Positions 3,652 through 32,419 are shown, counted from the stretch's first letter. The stretch: 32,612 nucleotides of DNA from Ministeria vibrans ATCC 50519 (GCA_943704425.1 CALSCP010001908.1:1-32612); one strand, 5' to 3'. Made by a program: numbers and translations. Notes: a model not told the origin generated them from the sequence alone.

Positions 3652-4764
3652 TCACGCTGTTGATTCGATGACGAAACTCTGAGCGGCAGCGCCTCGAAGA
3701 TCAGGAGCAACACTCACAAGCAGACAGAGGAAGGCTGTAAGCGTGCAGATCATACGAATTGTGGTAATGGCCTGGTACGCACTCAACGACGCAATAAGTG
3801 AACCGCTGATGTCGAGTTGATCGTCCCACTTGACTGCAATGAGTGTCAGCACAAAGGCAAGCGTGAGCAAAATTACGCCAACAAGAACAGTCGTGCGACG
3901 CGAAACAGCGCCCGCGTCGTGTCGCTGACGCAGTTGGTCGAGACGAAACAACGCGCCCACTAAGGCAGCAGTACCAAGGGTCATGTACATTTGAGCACTA
4001 GCACCAGCATAGGACCCATAGGCAGCGGCAAAGTCTAACATGTCTGCTCCGCTTGCAAAGACAACCCGTGTGTGGAAAATCGCAAAACCTGCAACAAGAC
4101 CCTGTGCGGCATGGCCCGCAAGAGCTAACAGCGACAGAAAGTACCAGTGTAAGCGTATCAGAGACTCTGAGGAAAGCTCACTCGCGTCCACGATTGAGGG
4201 TATTGAACGCCCCTCAACCAGCTGCTCTCGGGTTTTGCGCGTAAACGCTCCGCCTTCTTGAACATACACAAAGTTGCGCACTTGGCTTTCGGGCACGGCA
4301 GCTGCAGCAACATCTATGCTCCTCTTTCGCTGCTCATGAAAAACAGACGACGGTTCATGAGGCAGCCGTGACCCTCGTCGCACTGCGACTTCGCTTGTAC
4401 CATGACCGCCCAGGCTGTGGTTGCTGTCACCAGGTCGCCCCCTGATAATATCCTCTTCGTCAATCATGAGGGGTGGTGGAGATGAGACATTGATAGACGC
4501 AAGTTTTGAATTTGAATGTTGCGTTTGCTGCAGAAAGGCTGCCGTAAGGATGTCAGCCGCAGGTTCGTGTGAGTCATAGACATGTGAAGAAGAACTTTGG
4601 CGGTTTGATATCATCGCCGCATCGCTGACCGTAGCCAAGGACGGTAAGGCGTTGCCACGGTGATGACGAGCGAGAGATTTTTCAGGGAGCCCCGGAATTC
4701 TCTTGGATTTGCGTGTTCCACGTGCACTCCCCTGTACATGCACAGCACGCTCCTCTTCTGACAT
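3652..4764 (-). CDS. TMEM237: TMEM237-like ciliary transition-zone membrane protein (370 aa, single exon)
   Basis: Long disordered N-terminus followed by 4 TM segments. The stretch GHAAQGLVAGFAIFHTRVVF...Y...QMYMTLGTAALVGALFRLD resembles TMEM237 (HGFLAG.AVW...Y..L..PF..L.Y.L..LS.ISAFDR.D, recalled). Confidence 0.7.
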   Translation of the reverse strand: MSEEERAVHVQGSARGTRKSKRIPGLPEKSLARHHRGNALPSLATVSDAAMISNRQSSSSHVYDSHEPAADILTAAFLQQTQHSNSKLASINVSSPPPLMIDEEDIIRGRPGDSNHSLGGHGTSEVAVRRGSRLPHEPSSVFHEQRKRSIDVAAAAVPESQVRNFVYVQEGGAFTRKTREQLVEGRSIPSIVDASELSSESLIRLHWYFLSLLALAGHAAQGLVAGFAIFHTRVVFASGADMLDFAAAYGSYAGASAQMYMTLGTAALVGALFRLDQLRQRHDAGAVSRRTTVLVGVILLTLAFVLTLIAVKWDDQLDISGSLIASLSAYQAITTIRMICTLTAFLCLLVSVAPDLRGAAAQSFVIESTA

Positions 4765-5117
4765 TAAACGGAAGGAGTAAAAAAAATAAAGAATAAATTT
4801 TGAAGAGTTTCGAAATTCTTAATTCGATCTAGGGCGAACCTCAAAAGGACGGATCCTTAGCACCCCCAGGATACGCCCTCACAGGCGACAGCGAGCGTAC
4901 AAAAAATTAGTTTCATGAAGAGGGCTAAAGAGAGGCACGCACACCGAGAGCACATGCCTGCGAGACAGCATGGTAGGTAGCGGTATGTTATTATTAGTAT
5001 GATAAAAGGTATTGAAAAATGACTTGTGAAAAATAACTAATTGTGAAGTATAATACGCTAATAGCAACACAACCATTAATAATAATAATAATAAAAAAAA
5101 TTCGGTTGACATATCAC

Positions 5118-8100
5118 TCAAACAACAGTCTCGTCCTCGCCATCCTCTTCCTCCTCGTCGTCATACTCTCTTTCTTCTCCCTCTTCTCCTTCTCCTTCGT
5201 CATGCTTGTCAAACGCCCATGGGGTTGCCTTGGGCGACTGAGGCAAGTCCAACTGATCCAACTGAACCTCTGTCTCTGGCGCAGCATGTGACTCAACATC
5301 ACGGTGTTGTCGCGCAACGGGCAACGGCGATGGCACAGGAGACACGACCACAGAGGGCTCCGCTTCTCCAATGCTATTTTGAGTCATGGGAAGCAACGGC
5401 GCTGCGGTCGACTCCATGCCAGACGAGACAATCACGGTCGACTTAAGTTCCTTGGGCGTTGGTGCAGCAGGCGGATGGCTACGTGCGTACTTGATGCGCG
5501 GAACAAAGAACGCCGAAAGCGTGACAATCGACGTGATGACCAGACCAATGACCAGCAGTGTCATGTCGGCGTCGGGCGAAAGCGTCGACAGGCCGAGTGT
5601 AATGGCCAAAATGAGGGTCGCCACAAACGCAATGTCATAAATACAAAATGCAATCCATCGACTCTCATTGAACAGCGGCTGATTGTTTCGCGCCTGATAC
5701 GCAATCACAATGCCAATAATGACCACCAGACCCTCAATGACCAGCAACGCATACAACCAGGGCGTGCGCGCATCACATGTCAACCACTCCTCCGTGCCAC
5801 TCGACGTCACCACCACCACCACGTTGGGCGGCGACACCACACTCCACACAATCAGATACACCACAACAGCCAAATTGATCCCTAGAATCACGGTCAGCAG
5901 CTTCGTGTCAGACAGAAACGACAACGATTTCAAGCTCTTGTTGTTAAACACCTACAAAGTAATAAAAAAAAAAAAAACATACACGCAGATGTTTGTCAGT
6001 AAATGTATTCTCCGCATTCTGCTGGTGTACCGAGTTGGTGCGCCATGTTTTGACAAGGAGTGACGAGAAGACAAGGAAGAAGGCCAAGTGGGCAAACCAT
6101 TGTGTGAGGATGCAGATAGGATTGGTCGGGGCGCGCGTGATGAAAACGGCGGCCAAACACGCACAGATGCAGCCAGCAACTGTGATAAGACCATACTTGA
6201 CGCCACCTGCCTTGACTGCCTTTACTTTTCGATAGTGCAGCGTGCACGCGGCAAGAACAATGGCGTACACAATGATAAGACAACAGATGGCAAGGAGTGC
6301 ATCGCGAAGGGGCCAGGACATGTCGACGTCGTCGTTCTCAATGACAAGGACAAATGAGCTCGACGAACTGCTCACGGCACCGCTTGTGTTCAACGTAAAA
6401 AGCGCAGCCAAGGACGCAACACCGTTGGCAAACGGCACGAAATCGTTCGTCAAGTCCACCTCAAAGAAGCGACTGCCCACCTCCGAGTCGTTCCAGGTCA
6501 CCTCAGCAGATGCAATAACGAAATTCACGCCAAGCTGAGCCACCTCGCGACTGCCCACCTCCGCGGAAGTGGTTGATGCGGGAACGGTAAGACGAGCAGT
6601 GACGGTACCACTGCCAGGCGCGTGGCGTACCACCTCAACGCTCACGCGACCAGATCGCTCAAGCGCCTTTCGAATGGATGAGCCAAAGAGAAGTGTGCCA
6701 CCGTCACCATCGTCCACAACGTTGAGTGTGAGCACCACTGGATTCGATGGAGACGTGCCAGGCGAGCCCGAATCAACATGCGTCGCCGAAATACGAAACA
6801 CACCAGAGTGGTGACTCGGCGAATACTTATTATCGTCGCGCAACGGTATGTACACACCAATGTCGCCGCTCGATCCGTTCGGCCACGTCACCGTGGTGGA
6901 GGCCGAATCAATCACAAAGGTCGAGGGGCTGTTCGTTGCTTCCATCGTGACGTGGGCACGAATCATGCCGTTGGTACCGTTGGAGCGTCGCAGGACCAGT
7001 GTAGCGCCACTCAAGCTCTCGCTGACCGTCATTGACGACGTCACAAAGGCAACTGTACCATAATTGCGCGAATAGTCAATGTACAGCTCCGACTCAACTT
7101 GGACAGTGCGTGGATGCTGGCGCACGGCAAAGATGAGGCGACGAGGCTTGCTTCCGGCATCGTTCGGGAGAATGCGGAGGAAGGTCGTCACACTGACGGT
7201 GGTGACCCCCTCGGCGAAGACCACCGTCGTTGTGTTGGCAATGTAGTCTGTGCTAGGCACCGCGTCGTCTTCATTGCCAACGTACACCACCAGTAGCTCG
7301 GCGACCGTGGTGCCGACGCCACTGGCACGCGTGGCAAAAAAGTCAACCTGGCCAATGGTGTCTTGGACGAGCCGACGATCGTTTGAAGGCGAGATTGACA
7401 CACCCGCCTGGCTCATGTCCAGCTCAACGGTGACACGCTGTTGTGAAGCATTGACAAAAGGAAAGTCGCGGATAGCGACAATGTGGGGGAAGCCAATCAC
7501 AGCGTGTGATGCATCGTCAATGCTTGGAATTATACGCCAGACCGGCTCGGTCGGATTCGAAAGAAGGGTTCCGTCACCAAGAAGACCGGATTGACCCGAG
7601 GAGTGCACAAAGACCGAGCCATTAGTTGCAAGGGCAAGAATCCCCGACTCACTGCAAGCGGCAAAGCGCACAGAGACGGTGGGCAGCTGTCGATTGGGCT
7701 TGAGGCCAAACATCAGGCCGGTGACAAACAGTTGATGGTTTTCGGTCACAAACACGGAGAAGGTGACCGTGGTGGACGTCGCGGCCGAAGCGACAAGAGG
7801 GATAGCGGTGCCCGCTGTTGCTGCCAAGAGATCGATTTTGGTCGGCGCAAAGCGGCCCACCAGGTCGCCTGTGCCAAGGGCCCCGGCAAAGTTGTCTCCT
7901 ATAGCAAAAAGATCTCCATTGGCTGTCGTGATAAATGTAACACGACCACTCGCAGACACGTCGGTGACAATGTGGTCGCCAAGCTCGGCGATGACTCCCA
8001 GCGACAAGTCAAGCTTGCTCACTCGCCCAAGCTGTCCCCAACTGTTATCTCCACGACACAATAACTGCCCGTCGGTGGACAAGAGACATAAGTGGTCGTT

Positions 8101-10639
8101 GGCAATCGCGATTTTGCGCCAGAGAAGAATGGAAGGCAAAAGTTGAGGATTTTCAAAAGCCGCATTGAAACTGACGTCAATTAGGCTGCCATGGTTGGAG
8201 CCCCAGGCATAGGCTTTGCCGGAGGCAGTGACATAACCAGTGGTGCCGCCGCCAACACTCAACTGAATGACTGGATCAACGACCTCACCTGCACCATTGT
8301 ACACGGTACCCGCGCCAGGCATGGTCACGGCAGGGTACGCATTAAAAGGATCTAAGGGTGACGTGAAGTCGCTGACAAGGAAACTGCTGGCGGGCGATCC
8401 CCAGCAGTAGAGGAGACCCACGTCGGATACGATACAAGAGTGCCCGTGCGGCGCCTCAAGCGACGTGTATCGAGTGGGCAACTCAGTCAAAAGAACATCG
8501 CTGGGCACGAGACAATATGTGCCCTGGCCATTCGGCTGCATTGTGCCACACATGTTCTGCTCGTTGGAGCCCAACACAGAGGCACGTTGCCCTGCATTCG
8601 TCTCAATCGTAATGGAAGGGTGTGAGCCGAAGCGAACAGCGACTGTGGCCACGGAGGCGGATGGGCTTGCAGTGGCAATGGCAGTGCGCAGAGCCGGGCA
8701 GTAGTAGGCGAGGCCAATGCGACAGAAGCGGCTTAAAACATTCACCGTGCAGTGGAGCCCATTAATGTTAGAGCCGGTGTAGGTGCGACAGCGATTGTCG
8801 GAAGTACCCGACCAAGAGTCGCACGTGGAGCCGAGCACAGTCACAGCAGGTCCGATGAGCGAGTCCATGTCGAGAGCATTTGCAACACAGGCGCACGCAT
8901 GTGTTGCCGCCGTCACATTGGGTGCAGGACAGGCAGTAGTGTCAAGAACGTCGCTGGCCACGACCCACTTACCGTCGGTTGCGCAATCGACGGCGAGCAG
9001 GGTCGTTGGGTCCGCACTGGAACCGCAGGCGTCGGAAAGGAACGCACGGGTACCGGCGTAAATGGAACCAGAGGTACGTGTGCAAGTTGCCTTAGGGTCG
9101 GCAGAGAAGTCTCGAGGCGATGGCGAAACAATGGCACAGGTGGCAAGAGGTTGTTCACATAGGGCGCCTGTGTGCGACGCTGGGCACGTGCACGTGAATT
9201 GGGTGCTTTCCAAGGGCGCAACGCACGAGGCATCATTCTGACATGGCGACGATGCACATGGATCAACGTTGCGGACACAACGGTAGCCGGGTTGAACGAG
9301 CGGATCGTTCACGCAAGTGTGCGTCGTCGAGTCGCAGGTGGTGGGAATGGAACATGCGTGGGTCGTGCAGTTGGTGCCCGAGCAACCTGTCTCGCAGAGG
9401 CACGGTGTGGTGGACAACGTTTGCGACCAGGTCACAGACATGGATCCGGGTTCACAAATAGATGTTCGTGCTTCGTTTGAGAGAGAAAGCAGCAGTGTGA
9501 CGGTGGGCAACGACATCTCGATGGCGGTGTTGACCTGTGAGTGACAACAAAAAAAAATGATTGAGATGATTCGCACAGTGGAGAGAGAGAGGGTAAGACG
9601 GTAAACGACGAACCTGTTGTGCTGTTAAATTAAGCGTTGTAGAGAAAGTGGTGCATGCGTATTGCGAGTCAGTTGGGGTGAGACGCAGGCGCTGGTAACC
9701 GCGCAAAGACAGCATCATGTACCTGTCGGCTGTGGTGTGGTCGTAGGTGCCCACAAAGGTGAGAGTAGCGGGGGTATTGGGAACAGGATCGATAAAGAGA
9801 AGAGGCAAAGGGTCGGCAGGGAATGATGCGACAGTCACTGTCTGTGAGTAGGAGCCACGACAGCCGCGAGAGCACGGCTCCAGTTCGCACACATCTCCGT
9901 CGAAGCCAACGCGGCAGGCGCAGGAGAAACTACCGCTGAAAAGAAAGGTGCAAGTACCTCCATGTTGACACGGCGACGACACACACGGATTGGAGGCGAG
10001 AGCAGTGACACTGACCGTGTCAATTGCCCACTTGGAATCATACGAGTTCTGTAGAGTGAAGGAGAGGGAGACCGCAGTTGCGTTGGGCGGCACTGCCACA
10101 AATTCCCCAAGCGACCGCGACGCGCCAAGCCACGAACTGGACGTGGCCGAGGAGAACACCGTGACGATGTCGCCGGTGTCAAAGGCGGCTGTAAGCTCGG
10201 CAACATCGGGCGAAAACTCCACGAGAACACACGTCGACAGAAAAGCGACAGAGACGAGCGACGCGTTTAGCGGAATCGCAATGTCGCCCACGTAGGCTGT
10301 AGCCGTATCCGACGTGAATCCAAAATGGGTGTCGGCCGCAATGAATCCCCCGTCGCCGTCAAACGCTTCCGAGAAGAGCTAACAGGAAGAAAGAAAGAAA
10401 AAAAAAACGAATAAACAAAAAAAAAATAATTATTATATTTTTATCAATAATTGCGCGTGCAAACGGAAACCCTCCCCACGTACATCGCTGTCTCCGTCGG
10501 CAATGTAATCCCACGAGTATCCAGCAGACGACTGAAAGGTGAACGAGCCGGGATCGTTGTCAAAGGTCTCGCGCAGCAGCAGCTGAGCGTGTGCGAGTGA
10601 CAACACCGCACACACACTCAGCACAGCAGCCAAGCGCAT
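5118..10639 (-). CDS. Class C (7tm_3/GABA-B-like) GPCR with signal peptide, jelly-roll-like domain, EGF repeats, RCC1 propeller and Calx-beta repeats (~1752 aa)
   Basis: Exons 10639-10484, 10378-9614, 9534-6031, 5951-5118, all phase-0 GT-AG. Signal peptide MRLAAVLSVCAVLSLAHA. EGF repeats NPCVSSPCQHGGTC...CACRVGFDGDVCE and DPCASSPCQNDASC...CTCPASHTGALCE. RCC1 blades (HSCIVSDVGLLYCWG; HLCLLSTDGQLLCRGDNSWGQLG). Calx-beta (GTVAF...VSE...LRRSNGTNG...VTW.NG...LRDD). 7TM class C motifs VKA, C...W...LAF.LVFSSLLVKTWR, FNESRWIAFCIY, FFVPRI. Acidic C-tail. Confidence 0.88.
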
Positions 10640-10919
10640 ATCGGCCCTCCCACAAGGCGGATTCCTCAAAACTCTATAATAAAAGGCGGTGTTCCGTTGC
10701 ACCAGTGTCCACCGACAGTACAGTCGCAAGTGGTGAGGCAGTAAAAAAAATATTGGGAATTTGGGGGGAAAATTCATAACAAAAATTTGTAAGAACAGAA
10801 GTTAACGCGTAATACCCATTTTGGGTGCTATTCTATGGTGTGGAAGCATTCATTTGCATTGTATAATGCATTTCTCTTCATGGTGTTTTTTTCTTCTCGT
10901 AGAGCACACTTTTCAATTG

Positions 10920-10995: not shown

Positions 10996-12537
10996 ATGCT
11001 TTCTTCGTCCAACCACCAGCTCAATGTGCTCTGCTATGTGACATTCGTGACCAGCATTATGCTGACGGCATGGAGCTGGTGGCGCATTCGCGACGACATC
11101 CGCGAGTATCTTGAAAGTGCCAATCCAAACCGTTCGGGCATTCTCGACCCGCTGAACCCGTATCAGACCGAAACATCTTACGTGTGCTTCGCGTTGGGCC
11201 TTGCATGCCTGTGCACTGTTGCACACCGCAGTACACAGGCCGTGTTGGGTCGTTCGGTCGCTGTGCGGTCGACCGTTTCCATTTTGCTCGGACTCACAAT
11301 CCTGCTGGGCATTTTTGGCACCGCTCCTGCTGCCACCGTCTCGATTGTGATGCAGCCTGTCCACTATTTTGGTCTTGCATTGGTGCATCGCTTTGCTGGC
11401 AGCTATCGACGCCAAGCATCCATGCTGTACGGATTTGCGCTGTCAATCGCACTGCTACAACTGAGCAACTCCAACCGAGATTTGCTCTCTGTATCCACCT
11501 CCGATGACCACTGGCTAGAATGGTGGAGACACGACGGCGCGCTAGATTTCCTTCCTTTATGGGTGCTTCGGCATCTTCGAGGCTATCGACACGGCTTCTC
11601 CTACTCGGTGATGCGCATGTTGGCCTTGCGCTTTGTCTCACTGGCGGTCGACATGCCCGAACTACCACCCTACGTCGAGCATGCCGCCTACTACTTTTAT
11701 CCTGTCAGTATTCTACGTAGCCCTCACATTCCCTTTGGCATGTGGTACGAGCAGTGGACGAGGAACACGATTGATGCGAAAAGATGGGATCGTGAGCTTC
11801 GCGGAGAGCCGCCTCGCACGGCGCGCTCGGGACTCGTTCTCGCCTTGAAACTTGCCTTGATTATTGCGCTGGTGGAATTTACCTCGGCGTATGTGTATCA
11901 ACCATCGCTGGTGACCATGATGGCCGAAGGTAGGCACAAGAGACTACTGGGTGAGCCCGACTTGGCGGTGTGGCTCTACCATTCGTCTACACCTCTTGTC
12001 ATTGCCTACTTTTTTGTGGGCGCTGTTGCCGGACAGCTGTGGGCGCTGGTCGCCGACGGTATTGTCATGCCGTACGACGTGCGTACGTCCCCCGTAATGT
12101 TCCCACGTCACATCTGGTCCATCAGCGCCTTCTGGAGTGTGATGAACGCGAGCATCTACTGCTTCACATCACGCTACGTGTACCTCCCGACTGGCGGCGG
12201 CGTCATTGGCATTGTCGCTGCCTACGCCTACTCTGCGTTGTGGCACAACGGCGACTTCTTGTCGTTTGCAGGACTCGCTGTCTACACGCTCTTTGAAAAG
12301 CTGGTCGTGGCGCGTCTCGTCGGGCGCGCACACTGGGGCGGTCTCCTCTCCGTTGTTTTGTGGCTGCCCGTCACCGCCTTGGTTACCTACATCTACTCCA
12401 TGGAGGGCGATGTCTACCTCACGTCGCTTCCCTACATTTTTGTTCATGCCCTCGTCGTATACGCCGCCACGCTGCTCCTCTGTCGGCTTTTCCCCGTTTG
12501 TCAAAGCGAGAAGAACGACCGTGCCAAAGTAGATTGA
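10996..12537 (+). CDS. Membrane-bound O-acyltransferase, HHAT/GUP1-like (513 aa, intronless)
   Basis: Multi-TM protein with LRFVSLAVD, YYFYP....P.IPF, SISAFWSVMN...F..RYVYLP.GG and YSALWH (catalytic His). The RYVYxPxGG...WH pattern is characteristic of the HHAT/GUP1/AlgI/DltB branch. Confidence 0.85.
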   Translation: MLSSSNHQLNVLCYVTFVTSIMLTAWSWWRIRDDIREYLESANPNRSGILDPLNPYQTETSYVCFALGLACLCTVAHRSTQAVLGRSVAVRSTVSILLGLTILLGIFGTAPAATVSIVMQPVHYFGLALVHRFAGSYRRQASMLYGFALSIALLQLSNSNRDLLSVSTSDDHWLEWWRHDGALDFLPLWVLRHLRGYRHGFSYSVMRMLALRFVSLAVDMPELPPYVEHAAYYFYPVSILRSPHIPFGMWYEQWTRNTIDAKRWDRELRGEPPRTARSGLVLALKLALIIALVEFTSAYVYQPSLVTMMAEGRHKRLLGEPDLAVWLYHSSTPLVIAYFFVGAVAGQLWALVADGIVMPYDVRTSPVMFPRHIWSISAFWSVMNASIYCFTSRYVYLPTGGGVIGIVAAYAYSALWHNGDFLSFAGLAVYTLFEKLVVARLVGRAHWGGLLSVVLWLPVTALVTYIYSMEGDVYLTSLPYIFVHALVVYAATLLLCRLFPVCQSEKNDRAKVD

Positions 12538-12626: not shown

Positions 12627-14801
12627 TTAAAACGGCTGTTGAACGTGAGGCAGGAAGGGGGCGGGTTGGAGGGTGACAGGATGAAAGGAGCCCACGGGTG
12701 GGGCTACGGATGGTGTGGGGCCAGTGTGGCTCAGGTAGTCGGTGGGCGCGCTTGGCTTTGTGCTGCCGTTGGTGGCGACGGTTGTCGTGGGGTTGAGGAA
12801 TGAGTTGAGGTAGGGCAGGCCGAAGTCGAGGTTGAGGGGCGGGAAGGCGGTTTCGGGCGAGGCGCGCGTGTTGTCTGAGGAGACGAGACTGAAAATGGCC
12901 GAGTGGGGACCGTACGGTCCATTGGTTGTGTCGGGCGACATGGAAGTCTCCTGCTCGAGGAAAGCGCGAGCTTCGTAGAGGTCACGCTGCATGGTGTCGA
13001 CGTAGGGCATGGACTCGGTGAGCCACTCGTCGACGCGTACCGACGCCATGGGCGAGGCGCGCGTGATGCGCTCCAGCTCAAGAACCTGAGCTGAGGGAGC
13101 CGCTGTGGTCGAGGGACGTGAGCGTGAAGCGGCAGCGGCCGCAGCTGCGGCAACGGCCGTGGCCGACGCTGCAGCTGCGGCCGTCGCCTGGGGTCCAAGT
13201 GCGGCAAATAAATGTTTAGTGCCCATAGCGGCGACTGCGGCGGCTGAAGCGGCGGCAGCGGCGGAATTCGCACGCCGTTGCTGCTGTACACGCTGGTGCT
13301 GTTGTTGTTGCAAATGCATTTGCTGGAAATGGTGATGTTGTTGGTGTTGTTGCATGAGGAGTTGTCCTTGTTGTTGCTGTTGCTGTTGCTGTTGTTGCTG
13401 TTGTTGCTGCTGCTGCTGTTGTTGTTGTTGTGGGTCTTGATCGAGAACCATGAACGGAAAGGGTTGACGTGATTGTTGGGGCGGTGAAAGTGCAGTAGGA
13501 AGTACGGGAGTGTACGAGGAAGCGAGGTATTGTGTCAAGGACAAGTGAGGTTGGGTTTGTTGTTGCTGCTGATGGTGCGAAGTGTGCTGTTGTTGCTGTT
13601 GCTGTTGCTGTTGCTGCTGTTGTTGCTGGAGGGTGTGTTGCAGTTGTTGTTGGAGTTGGTGGGCGGAGGCTGCGGCGGCCACGACGGCAGCGGTAGCAGC
13701 GGCGACTGGGTCGCTGTAGCCGGTGGTGATGGAAGCGAGGTCGCGTTCGAGTTGCGTGACAAAACGCACCTGAGCGGGAAGTGGACTTGGAGCGCAGCCG
13801 TGACGAGGAAAGTGAGTCTCAAAGTCGCTGAGAAGAAGGAGTTGGGCATTGAAGAGACGCGGCACAATGGATAGACGAAAGTTGATGGTTTGCAGGAGGT
13901 CGCGACAAGCATCGACCACTGTGTTCTGCGATGCCTGCTGGCTACTCTCGAGTGTCGCACACAGCTGGTTGACCTCTAGCGAGACAGTCGAATGGCAAGT
14001 CTGGCGCAAAAACTGAGTGAGAAGGCATATTGCCCTCCAGGTGATTTCGGCCGTCGAGGACTGCTCGTAGGTCGACGTGGATGAAAGGGTGTGCTGATGT
14101 TGTGGCTGTTGTTGTTGTGGCTGTCGAGATTGCTGTGGTTGTTGATGTTGGGGATGAGATGAGGCAGAAAAAGATGTCTGACGATGAAAAAAAGGATCTG
14201 CCGCGAGGGGTACGGACGAAGGCGCCGCTGTGGTGCCGGGAAGGTGGGTCGTGGTGTCGATCGCGGCTGGGGACGAAGGCGATGGCTGAAAGAGCGCCTG
14301 TTGGCGCGGAGAGAGAGGGAGGGGCGGTGGCGAACGATTGGCCGAAAAGCAATTTGGAGAGTAAAAGGATCCGCCCGCGGCCGCCGCAGCGGGCAAGGGG
14401 TAGCCATACTGAGTGGGAACGTAGGTGCAGTTGGGCACGTTTGTGGGCAGGGGCGCTGCAGTAGGTGCCGTCGGAACGAAGGATCGCGCAGTTGCGGGTG
14501 TGTTGGGTGCGTAGTACGACGAATGTGTGTCTGGATAGGATGCTGGGGGTAGCCCCGCGACGTTGGGCCAGGTGGGGGCAGTGGGGGCGTTTACGACGTT
14601 TGCCATTGACGTCGTCGCAATTTTTCTTGCACGTTTGCGCTGCTGACGTTCCTCCTCGACGTCGTGTTGGTCCAGCACGGCATCCTCCTCGACGGCCAGA
14701 CGTGTACGTTCGCGTGCACGCACCGCCGACGCCCGTACAGGCCGGCTGGACGGGCGAATCTCCCCAAAGTGGACGTCAGCGCCATTTACAAGACCATTCA
14801 T
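12627..14801 (-). CDS. Orphan low-complexity polyQ/polyA/Pro-rich protein (~724 aa), possibly nuclear
   Basis: 2.2 kb uninterrupted ORF with first ATG at 14801. Basic cluster QQRKRARK, three Gln tracts, Ala tracts, and two predicted helical islands (EITWRAICLL...LERDLASIT; VLELERITR...EARAFLEQE). No family recognised. Confidence 0.75.
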   Translation of the reverse strand: MNGLVNGADVHFGEIRPSSRPVRASAVRARERTRLAVEEDAVLDQHDVEEERQQRKRARKIATTSMANVVNAPTAPTWPNVAGLPPASYPDTHSSYYAPNTPATARSFVPTAPTAAPLPTNVPNCTYVPTQYGYPLPAAAAAGGSFYSPNCFSANRSPPPLPLSPRQQALFQPSPSSPAAIDTTTHLPGTTAAPSSVPLAADPFFHRQTSFSASSHPQHQQPQQSRQPQQQQPQHQHTLSSTSTYEQSSTAEITWRAICLLTQFLRQTCHSTVSLEVNQLCATLESSQQASQNTVVDACRDLLQTINFRLSIVPRLFNAQLLLLSDFETHFPRHGCAPSPLPAQVRFVTQLERDLASITTGYSDPVAAATAAVVAAAASAHQLQQQLQHTLQQQQQQQQQQQQQQHTSHHQQQQQTQPHLSLTQYLASSYTPVLPTALSPPQQSRQPFPFMVLDQDPQQQQQQQQQQQQQQQQQQQQQGQLLMQQHQQHHHFQQMHLQQQQHQRVQQQRRANSAAAAASAAAVAAMGTKHLFAALGPQATAAAAASATAVAAAAAAAASRSRPSTTAAPSAQVLELERITRASPMASVRVDEWLTESMPYVDTMQRDLYEARAFLEQETSMSPDTTNGPYGPHSAIFSLVSSDNTRASPETAFPPLNLDFGLPYLNSFLNPTTTVATNGSTKPSAPTDYLSHTGPTPSVAPPVGSFHPVTLQPAPFLPHVQQPF

Positions 14802-15063
14802 GCCTCCCACACAAGAGAACTCTGGGACCGCTCAGTCCACAGCAAAAGCCAACAGGCACTGAAGGGCAGGGGGCGAGCGAGATTGCAATTTGATTGCCCT
14901 ATTTGGATTTTTGGATTTTTCTTTTTGGGCATTTTTTTGCCATAAATTTTTTTATACAAATCATTATACCTAAAATATAGAAATCAAATCAAATCAAATC
15001 AGTATCAGCTTATTCTTCTTCTCCCTCCTTCTCTCTCTCTCTCTCTCTGCGTTTTCTTGATCC

Positions 15064-24596: not shown

Positions 24597-26108
24597 TTTG
24601 CAGGTCATTTATGTGAACAATTTCAACAAACCCTTTTTCCTCACTTACTACTCGACCTCCATGTTCTGCATCTACTTCGTGGGCTTCCTCGTCAAGTCCT
24701 CTTGGCGCCGGCAATGTCGCGACTGGCTGTGCGCTCGACGAAGCGCGACACTCGTCGACAGCGATGCAGTCGAACGCGCCAACTTGATCAACAGAGATGA
24801 AGACGTTGAGTCGCCCGCCTCCTCGCAGGACGGACGCGACGACGATGGCCCCGCTAGCACCGGTCGCGATGGATCAGACGAACCCTCCGCTGCAACCACT
24901 CCGCGTGCCGCCTCAGAGACCCCCGTCGAGATGCTCACCATGGCCGAGACGGCACGCGCCGCCCTCATCTTCTGTCTCTTGTGGTTCGCCGCCAACTACA
25001 CCTTCAACCTGTCGCTCACCATGACCAGCGTCTCCTCAAACACCATCATTTCAAGCACATCCGGCTTCTTCACCCTCATTCTCGGTGCCCTTTTCGGTCG
25101 TTCCGTCGTCGAGCGCTTCTCCCTCATCAAACTCGTGTCCGTCGGTGTCAGGTTACACGCACGCACAAATTTTCCGCCTCTATCCTCCCTACCTCACACT
25201 TTTTATCCTCTCTACCTCACACTTTTATCCTCTCTACCTCACACTTTTTGTCCTCTCTACCTCACACTTTTTATCCTCTCTACCTCACACTTTTTATCCT
25301 CCCCACCTCACACACTCTCTCCTCTCACTTTATTGTTTCTCTCTCTATCACTTTATTCTCTTCATCTTATTCTTTCTTTTTTTGTAGTATTGGCGGTGTT
25401 GCCCTGGTGAGTTTGTCAGATACACGCAATGCGTCGTCAAGTGGCAGTGCACCGCTCACAGGCGATCTTATTGCGCTCGTGTCCGCCTTCCTCTACGGCG
25501 TCTACATGACCTTCCTGAAGCGCGCCGTGGAGACCGAAGACCGCGTCGACATGCCGCTCTTCTTTGGCTTTGTCGGTGCCTTCAATGTGGTTCTCATGCT
25601 TCCCTTTTTCTTCATTCTCAACGCAACCGGCCTCGAGGTGTTCGAGTGGCCGCCCGACGGCCGTGCCTGGGGCTTTCTCACGCTGTATGCCCTTGTCGGC
25701 ACGGTTCTCTCCGACTACCTCTGGTTGTGGAGCACCCTCCTGACGTCGCCTCTTATTGCCACCTTGGGCCTCAGCCTCACCATTCCCGTCGCTCTCACCG
25801 TTGACACCCTCCGAAAAGTCGTCCATCCAAACTGGCTGTATGGCGTTGGCACCCTCCTCGTCTTTGCTTCCTTCGTTGTCGTCAATCTAGCCTCCGTTTA
25901 CGATCTCTCCTGGTCTAACCTCGTCGTCCTTTGCCATCTCCCCTCCGCCTGTGTACCCCGTATACATGCACCATCCTCCTCGTCTTTGCCTCCTTCTCCG
26001 GGGGTCTCGCCCCACGATGACGACGACGTGACCAGTCGCACGAGCATTCCTATGCACGCCATCGCTCCGTCTTCTTCTGCGTCTCCATCTCGCTGCTGCG
26101 ATGCCTAA
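24377..26108 (+). CDS. SLC35F5: SLC35F5/Thi74-like EamA-type transporter (~470 aa)
   Basis: Exons 24377-24520, 24604-25151, 25388-26108. Motifs IWVGSSEL, FNKPFFLTY, FCLLWFAANY, TIISSTSGFFTL, GDLIALVSAFLYGVY, DMPLFFGFVG, GTVLSDYLW, TSPLIATLGLSLTIP. Confidence 0.9.
25181..25312. repeat. Minisatellite, ~6 copies of a 22-23 bp unit, in SLC35F5 intron 2
   Basis: Unit TATCCTCTCTACCTCACACTTTT with few substitutions. Confidence 0.9.
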
Positions 26109-26483
26109 ATTCTTTGTATCATACGTACACTGTATACAACAAAACAAACAACTTTATTCGAAATAGAATAGAATAAATTAATAATAAAATCAACTATCAC
26201 CTGATTCATGTCAGGGTGACAATGGATTTCATTGTCGCTGCTCAAACAACTTAGAGCGGTAATAAAATTTATAATTATATTGATCAAAAATTATAATGAA
26301 TATAAATTAATAATAATAATTAAACGCCGCCAAGCCAAAAGATGCTCAAATCCAGACCTGGGACACCCCGCGCTCTATGGCATTACCTATAATTTTTTGG
26401 AGTTCTTGGTGCGCCGCCTCGTTCACAATAATAATAATAATTATTATTATAAAAAGAAAATAATTAATAGAGAATCGAGTGCA

Positions 26484-26714
<231 letters not shown>

Positions 26715-26735
26715 TATTTTTTATTTTATTATTGT

Positions 26736-29700
26736 TTACATTTTCACAGGTCTCGCAATGTGCAATCGACCGGTCTCGGCCTCACACGCAACCACTGTGC
26801 CGTCGGCGGACACCGTCGCATGATTCACACGCACGGCACCCATCGTCATAACGTCCCACTGTCGCACCAGTCGGTTCCAGCGCAGCAGTGCACCCGTCGA
26901 GGTCCAGCACACCAGCTGGTGACGCGTCGCACACGCCACCCCGACAATCTTCTGGCCATCTGTGTTTGACTCATGCCAGTCGCCACTCAAATTCAACTGG
27001 TAGTACAGCGTGTGCCGATCGTCGACAAGGTACAACGAGTCGTCCGAGCCGGCCGCAAGCATCACGACGCGCTTCACACGGAAGGGCACGTTGAGCGTGT
27101 GCCAACGCCCGTCGCTGCTAGTATAACGCAATGCCGACGTGTTGTCTCGTGTGGTCGCCACCACAAGGCCACACCGACCCACACACAGGTTCGCCAGCGG
27201 CTCTACAGCCCCCGACGTGCCCCGTCGATCCATTTGCATCCACATTCCGCCGCTCCACCGCCGCGGTCGTCCAGCTCTGTCCAAGTACCACAACTCGCCA
27301 TCGCTCGACTGCGACACCCACGACGCCGCCATCACATCCGGGCCCACCGTCACCATGGCGTACCGGTGCCAGCGCATGCCATTCCACGACAAAATCGCTC
27401 CATCGCCACTGCGCACCGCCACACACTCGTCACCACGACCGCCCGACGATACCTGCTGAACTACGCAGCCTCGAGGTCCCTCGGGCTGCAAGCCCATTGG
27501 CACCGTAAACGTTCCGTGCGACACAATTTTGCGCATGTCCTCGCGCGTCGCCGTACGCATCACACCGTCCGCGCCCAGCGCCACAATCGTGTCGTTTCGA
27601 TCCACCGACACACGCTGTACACCCGTGAGACCAGGCACCAGGACCCACATGTCACCGTCGCCCAACTCGTACACCAAACCCAAGTCGGTCCAGCACACAA
27701 CCACACGCGCACCTGCCGCCACCCCGACGGGTGACATTTCCCCGCTGAGGTGGCGCCAGTCACCGTCAACAAAACGATACACTCGTCGCAGTCGGTTCAC
27801 GTTGTACATCGTGCCGTCCAGCGTCACCGCACACGACACACAGCGACCGCGCATCTCCTCAAAAGACGCCTCGCGACCGCATCGTTTCATCATGTTGCCC
27901 TCCGCATCAAACGTTAACACAAGCGAGTCGCTCGCAGCACACACAAACACTGCACTGACACCGGCAACGCACGTCCACTGAGGCAAACCACCACTGCCGC
28001 TTTGCAACAAAAGGGTGTCCATGTTCAGCCAGAACAGGCGACTGCGCTGGTCCGTCATCCACAGGTAGCGACCGTCGTGGGTCTGCGACACCGATGTGAC
28101 CATGCCAGGCAGGTTGCCCAGCTCGGTCCAGCCCGCAGCATCACTCTTGACGGCACCACCATCACCACACCACAGGTACATGCGACCTCGCTCGGTCACG
28201 CACACCACGCGCGTACCATCACCTGCAGCCACATGCTTCACACCGCGTCGCGACGCCACTGTACTCATATCCATTGTTGCATCGTAGGCAAGCAGCAGTT
28301 TCTCAAGCGCACGTTCCACGCCCCGCTTTGTCTCAAACTCCACAATCATCTCGTTGCCGGCTTCACGCTGATGAGCACTCAACAGTGTTGCGCGTCGCGC
28401 TCGTGCGTGGTTGCGCTGCGCCGACGACGCCAGTCCTGACAACACTGCACGACCATCGGCACGTTGCTGCGCGGCCGGCACTGCCGCTGTTGCTGCCGTC
28501 GCCGTCGTTGACGTCGTTGACGTCGCGGATCGCACACTTAACGATGATCCATGTGTGTCGAGCGCCTTGGAGGCGCGTCGTGTTGCTGCGACTTCAGAGT
28601 CACGAGACGACACGTGCGATGTCTCGTGGCCCACTACAAGATCAATGCACAACGGTGACATGGAGTCGAGTCGAGGACGCACCAGCAGCACCAACAACGA
28701 CGCATACGTGACCGTCCAGTCGTCCACCTGCAACAAGTCGCTCCCGCGCGACTCGGCAAGTTGCTTGCGCTTCGACGCGTCCAACCGCTCCAGCAACATA
28801 ACACGCTCGCTTGTCACAAAAAAGGCTGGTCCGTCGTGCGACACGCGCTCGCAATACACAAACAGCTCGCTGGGGCTCACCGTGCCCAGCTTCTGGAGCA
28901 TCTCCCAGCCAAGCGCTGCCTGTGCCGAATAATCTTCGAGCTTGCGCCCCAGCGGTACGTGGCGCGGTAGACGCTGACGTCGCACCTGTACTCCCGCAAT
29001 TTGACCGGGCAACATTGTCTTGACCGCGTCCAGTGTGCTCACCAGCGGTTTCACCAGCAGCCCAGTGCCGCCCTGAGCAACGCCACGCATGAATCCTCGG
29101 AATCCTTCGTTCTTGGCACCCTGGATGGGCGCCGTGACCACCCCCGTGAGTGACGACGCGAATCCCTTGAACATGGTCTTAAAACCGTGTCCGACGCGCT
29201 CCGACGTGCGTGTCAGCTGTTGCGCCGCAGCCTTGTCCGCGGCTCGCTCCTCCAGGTACGTGTGGTCCATGGTGGCGCGCGCAAGTGCACTCGATGCCGC
29301 ACCCGCCAGCAAACCAGTGGCAGCCAGCGGACTAAACGAGCTCACAAGCGCCTCACCGCCACGCTTGAGACCACTGCGGAAGCCCGCACCGTCGTGTCGC
29401 ACACCCATGATGGGCTCGTAAAAGAAATCCTTCACGCCCGTGCCCAGACCACTCAAAAGGGCCACAGGTGCAAGTACGTCAAGTGAGCCCACCACACGGA
29501 AAAGCTGGCGCATCGCCGCCTGACGATAGTGCTCGCCAAGGGCCACCAACAGCTCATTCGAACTGGTGCACACGTTGCGACGCTCGTGACCATTCAACTC
29601 GAGTCGAGTTGCCGACACGTCCGACGGAATTAGACTAAACACGTTGTGAACGTTGAAGCGGTGTCGCACTGCCTCGAGTCCCGGTGGAATCGACACCGCC

Positions 29701-32419
29701 TTGTCAAAGCTCAGCACAATCACAATGGGCTGCACATTCAACATCCAAATGTGAATGAGACTTGACGCATCCTTTGCCATCTCACAGTACGACAGCACGC
29801 CCGCCATTGGTACGCATGGCACTGACGTCGTCGTGGCTGCTGCGGTGGTGTCGTCCTCGTCGCTAACGACGCCAACCCAGCCAGAGCCATAGTTGGAACG
29901 GCTCGATATTGAGACACGCTTGGCTTCGACACGATATGTGTTGACAAACTCAAGAATCTGCAACAACTCCGTCTCCTCGATTTGCACACAAAGGCTCTGG
30001 CAGAGCAGATCGATGACGGGAAAGACTTGAACGCCGTGTGCAATGCGTCGCGACCGAGCAATGAACAGATGAAGAAAGGGAGGTGGTGCTGAGGCGCCTG
30101 TCGATGCAGACGTGGCGGGTCCCAAAGTGGCAGAGTTGGCAGGTGGAATAGCGCGAGACGTGACCGAGACTTGCGGGCGTCGCATGTCGTAGACACTAGT
30201 GTTGCGCGATGCCAGCGCAGCTGCGGCGACACCACCCGATGCCGTTGACGTTGTTGCTGTCGCTGTGTTTGTTGTCGTCGTCGTAGACGTAGTCGGCGAC
30301 GAGGCACCATTGTCCGTCGTCGTTCCAGATGCTGCATCCGTGGCAAGCACCGTGGGAAAAAGAAGGACAGGGTAGGGAACGGAGCGTGCAAGCATGTTGT
30401 CAATCTGCACCGACCCAATGTCCATCGTGACCATATCTTCGGCACTCGCTTCATACGCCACCAGCACATCGGTGAGACCCGCATAGAAGAGCTCGCGAGC
30501 AGTCAGATCCACAAGCGAGACGCCAATGCCGCGCGGCAGCGACACAACCACCTTGAAGAGCACCGTTGACAGTGCCTCGTCCGCCGACGCCGTCCCACGC
30601 CCCAACGACAAACTCGTCAGTGCGTCGACTTGAGTCGACGGTGTCGATGCTGCATCGCCCATGACATCACCTTCTCCGTTGTTTGCATCGGCATCAACAC
30701 GAGTGCCGCCACTGAGTAAGTTACTGAAGGCTGCATCGCGGATGTGCAACACGCGTGTCAAACCGTCCGCGCGCACTTCGCACTGCAACAGACCACTTCC
30801 AGGCACCGTCTTGACCACTTGAAAAGTCTGTACCAGTCCCACAGTGTCCGCGGGCGCTTCACTGCGCACCATCACACTCGATGGAACCACCGAGTGCGTG
30901 TCACCACCAGTACTACTGCCGAGTAGCACGCTAAGCAGAGACATCCGGAGCGAAAGATGAGGAAGACGACGATCGTGAGGCGACGACGGTTTGTCCAAAA
31001 GAACCACACGCCCACCGTCAATGGCCCACTTCGACGCACGCGTGCTGCCACCGTGACGCACCATCACCACACGAACCCCCTGCGCTGTGTCGATCGACGA
31101 AGTTCCGCCAGTGACGCTGAGTAGTCGTTTGGTCGCACGATTTTCAAGGTAGTGTCGATCAGTCAGACGCCACTGTTGCGCCTCTCGCTGTCGCGCCGCC
31201 ACATCCAATCGCACACCCGCATCCGCAAGCAAAATGGGAGCAGTGATGCGCGGCACTACCTCTTGTGGTGTCTGCCGACTGCTGCTGTTGCTGACACTGC
31301 CAGAGACGCTGGAAAGGAAGGCGGACGTGGAAGGAACAGTGGCTGCCAAGGGCGTGTCGGGCGAGTCCTCGAGTACTCGACTGCGACCCGCGTCGTCCTC
31401 AAACTGCAACATAAACCACAGCGGATAGCTAATCTCAACAGAGGTGTCGACAACATCGAGCGACACTTTTGTCGGCGGCGTGTCCGTCGTCGGCACAGGG
31501 TGATGTGGGGCCACCGCAGGCGAGACAGTCGCACTCTCCATCTGCGCACTGTTCACAGGCGTGAAGCAGAATTGCTGTCGGTCCGTCAACTCGGCAGAGG
31601 CTCGCATCAGCTGGACACCTTCCTTGCGACCAAGCGCAGACACCACCAGATCCGACGTCTTGCCACTGCGCAAATACCCATTGTCCACAATCCAATGTTG
31701 GTGGTACGCGTCACTCATAATAGGCAGGCGCGACACCACCCGCTGGCCCTCGTGCGCCTCTCCACATCCCTCCAGATCAAATACATGCCCATTGAATCGA
31801 TTCGTCAGCCGTCCGTCAGGCGAAAAGCGCCACATTTGCTTCGCAGCAGCTACAAAAACATTGATAAAAATCATTATTATTATTATTATAATAATAATAA
31901 TTAATAATAAGAGTTTTTTGTTATGTTTTCATACCTGCAGACTGCGTTGGAGAACGTCGAGTAATGGTGAGCGGGGAGTATTGGGTGTGGGTGGCGGGAA
32001 TGAACACGGTGCCTCGCGATGGCTCCACTTTGGTTTTGGATGGGTCACCCGCGACCGAGACCACCCAGCTCGAGAGGGTGTCACCAGATGATGTGCTCTC
32101 GCTCTCCGAACGCAGCTCAATGAAGTAGAACTCTTCCTGAGCATCGCGTGCTAGATCGGCCAAAGCCATGGCAGACGTCGCCAGCGCAACGTCAATCCCT
32201 TCAGGAGCGTGTTGGGGCACGGCGACATGCGAGAGCAGGGCCAAATCGGGGAACACATCAAGAATCAGTTGACTCGCGAGAGGGTCATCCGGGGCAAAGT
32301 CACCGTGGTCGTTGATGCTCACGCGCTCAAACGACATCTCTGCCATGCCGTGTTGTCGAAAGGCAAACGGCACGAGTGAACAGTTCTCCACGCGAATCGG
32401 TGGCGCGCCCAAATTCTCC
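26736..32419 (-). CDS. VPS13D: VPS13D-like lipid-transfer protein, C-terminal part (VAB end, 2 ricin-type domains, VPS13_C/ATG2_C, PH-like, tectonin-like tail); 5' end lies beyond the right edge
   Basis: Exons 32419-31935 and 31849-26736. Motifs PPIRVENCSLVPFAFRQ (VAB), QMWRF/QHW and QQWRL ricin-type repeats, PGSGLLQCEVRADGLTRVLHIRD (VPS13D-like), GIGVSLVD..RELFYA, VQIDN...YPVLL, HYRQ....LFRVVGSLDVL, LGTGVKDFFYEP, TMDHTY, GVVTAPIQGA..EG..GF..G...G..GLLVKP, RQRLPR. Confidence 0.9.

Follow-up and report, generated by a model that had tools for sequence, protein, structure and literature searches.

Class C G-protein-coupled receptors, or GPCRs for short, are textbook small-molecule sensors built on an extracellular Venus flytrap (VFT) domain. 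Their core is normally dimeric: the ectodomains shift their relative position and re-set the interface of the seven-transmembrane (7TM) domains. In the GABA-B receptor, GABA-B2 is the G-protein-coupling subunit. Here we describe a gene on the minus strand (10639-5118) of a 32,612-nt stretch of DNA from Ministeria vibrans ATCC 50519 (GCA_943704425.1 CALSCP010001908.1:1-32612; hereafter the window), whose predicted protein carries a class C 7TM core under a long arm of EGF, RCC1-like and Calx-beta-like modules. M. vibrans is a filasterean that lives in the sea and feeds on bacteria; a 2022 paper presented its genome (PMC9492541), and its class B GPCR count has been called "exceptional outside of Metazoa" (PMC13366479).

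Class C receptors that lack a VFT have been reported before. In GPR158 (mGlyR) and GPR179, which bind partners in the matrix, a Cache domain sits on an EGF-like element (PMC12716839, section 9), and several non-metazoans have species-specific configurations of receptors of the class C 7TM family, 7tm_3 (de Mendoza et al., 2014, PMC3971589). An earlier reading of the locus from its sequence alone (the sequence-only reading) had stated that class C receptors normally use a VFT, which these GPR158/GPR179 and protist cases show to be overstated. Garcia De Las Bayonas and King (2025) screened filasterean proteomes including that of Ministeria (PMC12716839). They reported EGF domains on non-metazoan Glutamate receptors, a greater N-terminal diversity in filastereans, and Calx-beta and RCC1-like domains (RLD) as ectodomains of adhesion GPCRs in filastereans and choanoflagellates (PMC12716839). 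RCC1 or Calx-beta on a 7tm_3 core is mentioned neither in the texts of PMC3971589 and PMC12716839, supplementary tables aside, nor in any paper that we found. The novelty claimed for the architecture is tempered: it would concern the placing of RCC1 and Calx-beta on 7tm_3, and not VFT-less class C receptors or species-specific protist 7tm_3 ectodomains, both of which are published.

With GABA-B2 and the metabotropic glutamate receptors (mGluRs), the M. vibrans receptor shares the 7TM core, the motifs K-T-W-R, F-N-E-S-R/K and F-V-P-R/K and the Cys pair between transmembrane helix 3 (TM3) and extracellular loop 2 (ECL2); its TM6 is GABA-B-like, without the Trp of mGluRs. Unlike them, it has neither VFT nor NCD3G and bears an EGF, RCC1 and Calx-beta-like ectodomain of ~1370 residues, with a Calx-beta-like repeat as the membrane-proximal element. 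GPR158 and GPR179, whose ectodomain serves matrix or trans-cellular partners, resemble it in the class C 7TM (similarity at E 3e-3 to 5e-4), the lack of a VFT and the presence of an EGF-like element. However, in these proteins, which are metazoan-only (PMC12716839), Cache sits directly on the EGF-like stalk, whereas in the M. vibrans receptor no Cache was found, the EGFs are distal, and RCC1 and Calx-beta-like modules are present. Adhesion GPCRs such as ADGRV1 (VLGR1) and the EGF-Calx-beta-7tm_2 receptor on contig C1507 of the same genome also have a long arm with EGF and Calx-beta, and a PDZ-ligand-like C-terminus, comparable to the E-T-V-V end of the receptor, is common among them; however, they combine a class B2 7TM (7tm_2) with GAIN/GPS autoproteolysis and a tethered agonist, and the receptor has neither. 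As in other protist 7tm_3 receptors, a class C 7TM lies under a lineage-specific, non-metazoan ectodomain. Among class C GPCRs, the receptor is a lineage-specific one that bears an ectodomain of adhesion type, and the shuffling principle behind it is already published.

A single spliced and transcribed gene

The receptor is encoded by one intact, spliced and transcribed gene. Read on the minus strand, it has four exons and three introns, all GT..AG and in phase 0, and its coding length of 52 + 255 + 1168 + 277 = 1752 codons, with no internal stop, matches the ~1752-aa protein that had been predicted from three such introns. Public runs comprised a small one from 2011, DNA from 2022 and four RNA samples from 2025. 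In run X3, one contig of 5228 nt spans 10644-5154 and omits exactly 10379-10483, 9535-9613 and 5952-6030; it starts at 10644 and contains the junction 10484/10378. Run X1 gave a 5172-nt contig from which introns 2 and 3 are spliced out. In X8, evidently a DNA run, intron 3 is retained in contig 5106-8889 and intron 2 in contig 8891-9772, and the X8 contigs break at 10378/10445, so that intron 1 lies outside their coverage. Furthermore, six near-identical fragments of the gene were found in X5, a seawater metatranscriptome. The exon boundaries proposed by the sequence-only reading (10484/10378, 9614/9534 and 6031/5951) are therefore exact, and its concern that transcripts might reveal separate genes is answered by the X3 contig, which joins all four exons. 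The parts of the gene are as follows.

10639-10484, minus strand: exon 1, 52 aa; ATG at 10639-10637; holds the first ~34 residues of the N-terminal domain after the signal stretch
10639-10586, minus strand: signal-peptide-like stretch, hydrophobic segment at aa 3-21, in agreement with the signal-peptide exon foreseen earlier
10483-10379, minus strand: intron 1, 105 nt, GT..AG, phase 0, T-rich; absent from the X3 contig
10378-9614, minus strand: exon 2, 255 aa
9613-9535, minus strand: intron 2, 79 nt, GT..AG, phase 0; absent from the X1 and X3 contigs, present in DNA run X8
9534-6031, minus strand: exon 3, 1168 aa, uninterrupted
6030-5952, minus strand: intron 3, 79 nt, GT..AG, phase 0; separates TM3 from intracellular loop 2
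5951-5121, minus strand: exon 4, 277 aa, followed by the stop codon at 5120-5118

Intron 3 is also validated by the protein family itself, because the 7tm_3 profile is continuous over it, from position 97 to position 104 (2-97 before the intron, then 104-251). EGF 2, the propeller, the Calx-beta-like repeats and TM1-3 all lie within the single 1168-codon exon 3, so the unusual fusion is independent of any splice. The start at 10639, and with it the 5' end of the mRNA, is probable only, because the transcript contig ends at 10644 and a second in-frame ATG exists at 10777, 46 codons upstream (10640-10777, minus strand). A start at 10777 would bury the signal peptide.

Between the window and the public runs there were seven single-base differences (6828, 8174, 8189, 8890, 9154, 9165 and 9773), five of them non-synonymous (K>E, V>A, G>D, E>D, A>T) and two silent; some came from low-depth contigs. 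The sample is too small either to support or to exclude constraint.

The receptor core and its extracellular arm

From the N-terminus, a signal peptide and the orphan N-terminal domain precede EGF 1; a spacer leads on to a Cys-rich region that encloses EGF 2, and the RCC1 propeller, the three Calx-beta-like repeats, the 7TM and the cytoplasmic tail follow in that order. Domain searches were run per exon and not on the joined 1752-aa protein, with the following result.

10378-9995, minus strand: exon 2 share of the orphan N-terminal domain, which counts ~160 aa when the exon 1 part is added; beta-rich
9985-9893, minus strand: EGF 1, Pfam EGF (PF00008) 3.2e-7, 30.9 bits against a cut-off of 21.5
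9892-9614, continuing into exon 3, minus strand: beta-rich spacer, strands predicted at low confidence
~9460-8578, minus strand: Cys-rich region enclosing EGF 2, with 34 Cys ahead of the propeller
9258-9166, minus strand: EGF 2, Pfam EGF 8.4e-5 (4.1e-6 on a sub-piece), 23.2 bits against a cut-off of 21.5
8577-7480, minus strand: RCC1-like domain, seven-bladed beta-propeller; WD40_RLD, RCC1_2 and RCC1 matches
7437-7090, minus strand: Calx-beta-like repeat 1, Pfam Calx-beta E 0.006, 17 bits, below the cut-off of 27
7077-6700, minus strand: Calx-beta-like repeat 2, ending in the acidic junction motif D-D-G-D; matches to P0051, P0163 and CALX (see below)
6687-6340, minus strand: Calx-beta-like repeat 3, ending in N-D-D-V-D, ~5 residues ahead of TM1
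6324-6031, minus strand: class C 7TM, TM1-TM3; 7tm_3 profile 2-97, 3.1e-14, 53.7 bits; TM3 Cys and K of K-T-W-R
5951-5496, minus strand: class C 7TM, TM4-TM7; 7tm_3 profile 104-251, 2.2e-21, 77.1 bits; ECL2 Cys, F-N-E-S-R and F-V-P-R
5495-5118 including the stop, minus strand: cytoplasmic tail, 125 aa, Ser/Thr/Pro-rich and then strongly acidic

Both halves of the 7TM score above the curated cut-off of 7tm_3 (PF00003), which is 33.5 bits, and a hydropathy scan showed seven helices. By its profile matches, the core is class C (Glutamate/GABA-B family) and did not score as another class, as had been read from the motifs K-T-W-R, F-N-E-S-R and F-V-P-R, which close TM3, precede TM6 and close TM7, respectively. 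When TM4-7 was compared with solved structures, GABA-B2 was the best match (6.6e-11), followed by GABA-B1 and the mGluRs (~1e-7 to 1e-6) and by GPR158/179 (~1e-3); TM1-3 matched GPR158, mGluR2 and GABA-B2 about equally. HMMER alignments with GABA-B2 and GPR158 indicated that the class C microswitches are kept, namely the TM3 Lys, the Glu before TM6 and the P-K/R of TM7, and both members of the TM3-ECL2 Cys pair aligned to the cysteines of GABA-B2 and GPR158. Pfam gave no match at E<=1 in the receptor exons to ANF_receptor (the VFT), NCD3G, Cache, GPS/GAIN or 7tm_2, and the segment adjoining TM1 is Calx-beta-like, not GAIN/GPS. The statement that the flytrap has been replaced is upheld by the lack of ANF_receptor and NCD3G in the exons of the gene. 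The tail is acidic, as described earlier, with 29 D+E vs 9 K+R. Its end (5121-5200, minus strand) consists of ~25 mostly acidic residues, the last four being E-T-V-V. This end resembles a class I PDZ ligand and may act as one; PDZ domains are encoded in the M. vibrans genome.

The stalk next to the membrane had been described as ~3 Calx-beta repeats. Its homology to true Calx-beta proteins stood up to the comparisons, whereas in Pfam (PF03160) repeat 1 alone scored, and that below the cut-off. In a scan of 1.84 billion representatives, P0051, a protein with 18 Calx-beta domains by Pfam, matched the stalk at E 2.8e-42 (phmmer); exon-3 residues 817-1073 align to eleven successive repeat pairs of P0051 with 15-30 bits per pair, and the match was to the stalk, not to the propeller. 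P0163, a Calx-beta autotransporter, matched at 1.7e-16 with 72% coverage in a word-indexed search with the stalk and TM1-3. Finally, the junction of repeats 2 and 3 aligned to the place where CBD1 and CBD2 of CALX, the Na/Ca exchanger of the fly, meet (E 0.04); the alignment covers the acidic D-D-x-D cluster, D-D-G-D here against D-D-D in CALX CBD1, and the G-x-x-x-F strand that follows. Because these three independent comparisons agree, homology of the stalk to Calx-beta is well supported at the level of sequence. Ca2+ binding is plausible where repeats 2 and 3 meet and where repeat 3 ends, but not at the junction of repeats 1 and 2, which is without the acidic cluster.

The ~7 RCC1-like blades of the sequence-only reading were borne out by a WD40_RLD match at 1e-30 over nearly the full profile (4-361 of 363; 107.8 bits, under its own cut-off of 150) together with RCC1_2 (46.9 bits, cut-off 22) and RCC1 (36 bits, cut-off 21.7), both of which exceed their cut-offs. 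Exon 3 drew thousands of RCC1 matches in the scan of 1.84 billion representatives, and in a word-indexed protein search it found RCC1 matches only, to bacterial surface-type proteins. The nearest RLD within the M. vibrans genome belongs to an intracellular HERC-like RLD-HECT protein. It had been argued that RCC1 propellers are mostly intracellular, which is overstated: because adhesion GPCRs of filastereans and choanoflagellates are reported to bear RLDs (PMC12716839) and the propeller has its nearest matches in bacterial proteins of surface type, an extracellular propeller is not odd in itself.

Further out, both EGFs, placed earlier at ~9990-9885 and ~9265-9155, are above the Pfam cut-off, and EGF 1 also matched Notch EGFs in the Protein Data Bank (PDB), with a best value of 3.7e-15. 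No Pfam family matched the spacer after EGF 1 or the Cys-rich region outside EGF 2. The N-terminal domain has no match in Pfam, no sequence match in the PDB and no paralogue elsewhere in the M. vibrans genome; contig C2844, which appeared to hold a relative, matched by its EGF alone. In the ESM Atlas, the domain's look-alikes were CBM_4_9, Cleaved_Adhesin and MAM clusters at 0.89-0.92 with <170 shared features, below the tool's reliability level, and a single-sequence AF2 model of exon 2 (pLDDT 38) was unusable for the fold. That the domain is a MAM/CBM-like jelly-roll is a reasonable guess, not a finding.

Relatives and paralogues

No relative of the full architecture appeared in any sequence search, though the searches have blind spots and may omit records of this genome or of very near ones. 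When exon 3 was scanned with HMMER against the 1.84 billion representatives, giant multi-RCC1/EGF proteins dominated and no full-length relative was among the best 150; a word-indexed protein search with TM1-3 alone and metagenome contig scans with exons 3 and 4 found nothing, and exon 3 had no usable match in the ESM Atlas.

The assembly of M. vibrans (29.7 Mb in 2860 contigs) is fragmented, and families were searched in six frames. Seven 7tm_3 loci were found, that is, the receptor and six others, which supplies the paralogue count that had been called for. ANF_receptor had no match in the whole genome, an absence that remains unproven in so fragmented an assembly, and the whole class C family of M. 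vibrans seems to be without a flytrap. Three of the 7tm_3 paralogues carry a cytoplasmic TIR domain immediately C-terminal to the 7TM (TIR_2 7e-21, 5e-19 and 2e-18). In one of them the same open frame also encodes a right-handed beta-helix ectodomain; for a second, such an ectodomain lies in the open reading frame (ORF) just upstream. A fourth paralogue bears a right-handed beta-helix with PMP repeats and is without TIR. For the combination of TIR with 7tm_3, no paper was found in the literature search. Because the paralogues carry beta-helix/PMP ectodomains on 7tm_3, the class C core would appear to be a general chassis for non-flytrap ectodomains in M. vibrans. The closest 7TM paralogue (C491) seems to be almost without an ectodomain and has a long Ser-rich tail; its intron follows the F-T-E-A-K loop, and the receptor's intron follows TM3. 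The loci concerned are given below, with the adhesion GPCR used for comparison.

L029:3959-8176, plus strand: class C paralogue C2106, of the beta-helix/PMP and/or TIR set
L032:4472-6331, plus strand: class C paralogue C1920, of the same set
L033:5163-6920, plus strand: class C paralogue C2373, of the same set
L030:4511-8260, plus strand: class C paralogue C2017, of the same set
L031:6008-9043, plus strand: C491, nearest paralogue by 7TM; its 7tm_3 score (3.5e-37) is the genome's best
L037:2975-7663, minus strand: C1507, canonical adhesion GPCR made up of EGF x8, a single Calx-beta and 7tm_2

The genome also holds ~50 adhesion-type 7tm_2 loci, most of them in open frames of 1000-2500 codons, and at least three G-alpha genes. 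EGFs are found in >150 loci, some in open frames of >4000 codons. We considered the ectodomain as a recent copy from an adhesion GPCR or an RLD protein of the same genome and rejected it: C1507 is similar to the receptor in the EGFs only, and the nearest RLD is the HERC-like one. The claim that the arm was built independently is supported by the same comparisons, and an adhesion-like ectodomain assembled independently on a class C core fits the sequence data because the arm is not a recent copy from a class B receptor.

The receptor's neighbours in the window are genes of ordinary kinds, among them those for a TMEM237-like ciliary protein, a CLC channel and a sulphur transporter. The downstream neighbour (3652-4764, minus strand) is TMEM237-like, of a ciliary transition-zone family (9.5e-8), suggesting an organism with a cilium or flagellum. 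The ORFs 10996-12537 (plus strand, 513 codons) and 12627-14810 (minus strand, 727 codons), which adjoin the receptor gene, have no Pfam match, and the former resembles a multi-pass membrane protein. A further ORF of 1712 codons (26736-31874, minus strand) has weak Tectonin, VPS13_C and Ricin-B matches, and its 3' end borders an AT-rich kilobase (26001-27000; GC 0.34 vs ~0.55 elsewhere). No light-harvesting (LHC) protein and no silicon transporter was found in the six-frame genome search; the organism is heterotrophic, given that LHC genes are lacking.

Proposed working and rival explanations

With moderate confidence, we favour the reading that the receptor is a sensor of contact or particles, which would relay through a Calx-beta rod to a GABA-B-like 7TM signalling by G protein. 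It is the most economical one because the set of modules is of a kind usual in proteins that attach to surfaces, polymers or other cells, and because the organism, a heterotroph that turns up in seawater metatranscriptomes, is bacterivorous and aggregating. In its favour we also count the class C motifs and Cys pair, the G-alpha and PDZ genes, the lack of any ANF_receptor match in the genome, the paralogues with other non-VFT ectodomains on 7tm_3, and the precedent of GPR158/179, in which an ectodomain other than a VFT binds matrix partners. Like other class C receptors, the protein probably acts as a dimer. For its distal modules (N-terminal domain, EGFs and propeller), a ligand that is macromolecular or attached to a surface is more probable than a small metabolite; candidates are the envelope of bacterial prey, the substratum and conspecific cells. 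In calcium-rich seawater, the Calx-beta repeats probably form a rigid rod that would hold the propeller, the EGFs and the orphan N-terminal domain ~1000 residues further out. As the last Calx-beta-like repeat is linked to TM1 by ~5 residues, a change in arm geometry, clustering or a pulling force could be passed straight to the 7TM, which keeps its switch residues and probably signals via a heterotrimeric G protein of the organism. The acidic E-T-V-V tail may tether the receptor to PDZ scaffolds. The tethered-agonist mechanism of true adhesion GPCRs is unavailable here, because there is no GAIN/GPS. The sequence-only reading had spoken of a Ca2+-stiffened stalk and of prey, surface or mechanical sensing, and we infer both from the sequence as it did.

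Several points weigh against the sensor reading. Ligand, dimer, G-protein coupling and Ca2+ binding are all matters that we infer, the fold of the N-terminal domain is unproven, and the acidic cluster is kept at only one of the two inter-repeat junctions. Since no orthologue was found, conservation of the architecture cannot be shown, and five non-synonymous variants out of seven give no sign of strong purifying selection, in numbers that are tiny. Furthermore, GPR158 and GPR179 are precedents for a class C 7TM whose signalling does without G-protein activation.

This last point leads to a G-protein-independent explanation, which we regard as unlikely although it is worth weighing: the ectodomain would serve adhesion, the 7TM would be an anchor and docking platform as in GPR158 and GPR179, which recruit RGS complexes, and the E-T-V-V tail would bind PDZ scaffolds. 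The 7TM matches to GPR158/179, which are modest (for TM4-7 below those to GABA-B2 and the mGluRs, for TM1-3 on a par with them), are consistent with such a scaffold, as are the large modular ectodomain without VFT and the PDZ-ligand-like end in a genome with PDZ genes. However, the ionic-lock K and E and the P-(K/R) motif of TM7 are kept, TM4-7 is nearer to GABA-B2 (6.6e-11) than to GPR158 (4.6e-4), and G-alpha genes are present, all of which count against it.

To a similar degree doubtful is a chemoreceptor for a soluble cue, in which the propeller or the N-terminal domain would bind a bacterial glycan fragment, peptide or ion and the rest of the arm would be a mere spacer lifting the sensor above the glycocalyx. 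Every characterised class C receptor whose ligand is known senses a soluble molecule, sugars are frequent ligands of beta-propellers and of CBM/MAM-like sandwiches, the RLD finds its nearest matches among bacterial proteins of surface type, and the look-alikes of the N-terminal domain include, weakly, carbohydrate-binding modules. However, no domain with a small-ligand pocket (VFT or Cache) was found, the set of EGF, Calx-beta and propeller is typical of adhesion and matrix proteins, and the very short link from stalk to TM1 suggests transmission of geometry or force. The weakest explanation, an artefact of misjoined separate genes or a decaying pseudogene, could appeal to the five non-synonymous variants out of seven and to the lack of orthologues in the searches but is highly improbable in view of the X3 contig over all four exons, the X1 contig over the last two junctions, 1752 codons without a stop, a fusion inside a single exon, a 7tm_3 profile unbroken over intron 3 and intact key motifs.

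The gene offers a transcript-supported case of a class C 7TM core under an adhesion-type arm instead of a flytrap, in an organism that also has ~50 adhesion GPCR loci and class C-TIR fusions. N-terminal shuffling on 7tm_3 is already known, and the value of the finding lies in the specific architecture and its testability. M. vibrans is a close unicellular relative of animals whose aggregation and prey capture are now under experimental study, and its receptor would let one ask how a class C 7TM switches on without flytrap closure. The receptor would also show how freely ectodomains moved between GPCR classes before animals. A bolder and more tentative view, which we hold to be possible rather than probable, is that the class C family of M. 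vibrans was rebuilt without flytraps and that this receptor is a functional analogue of an adhesion GPCR, which arose separately on the class C core, needs neither GAIN nor a tethered agonist, and senses contact with, or force from, bacterial prey or sister cells during aggregation. If true, cell-surface adhesion modules would have become linked to G-protein signalling a second time, independently, in a near unicellular relative of the animals.

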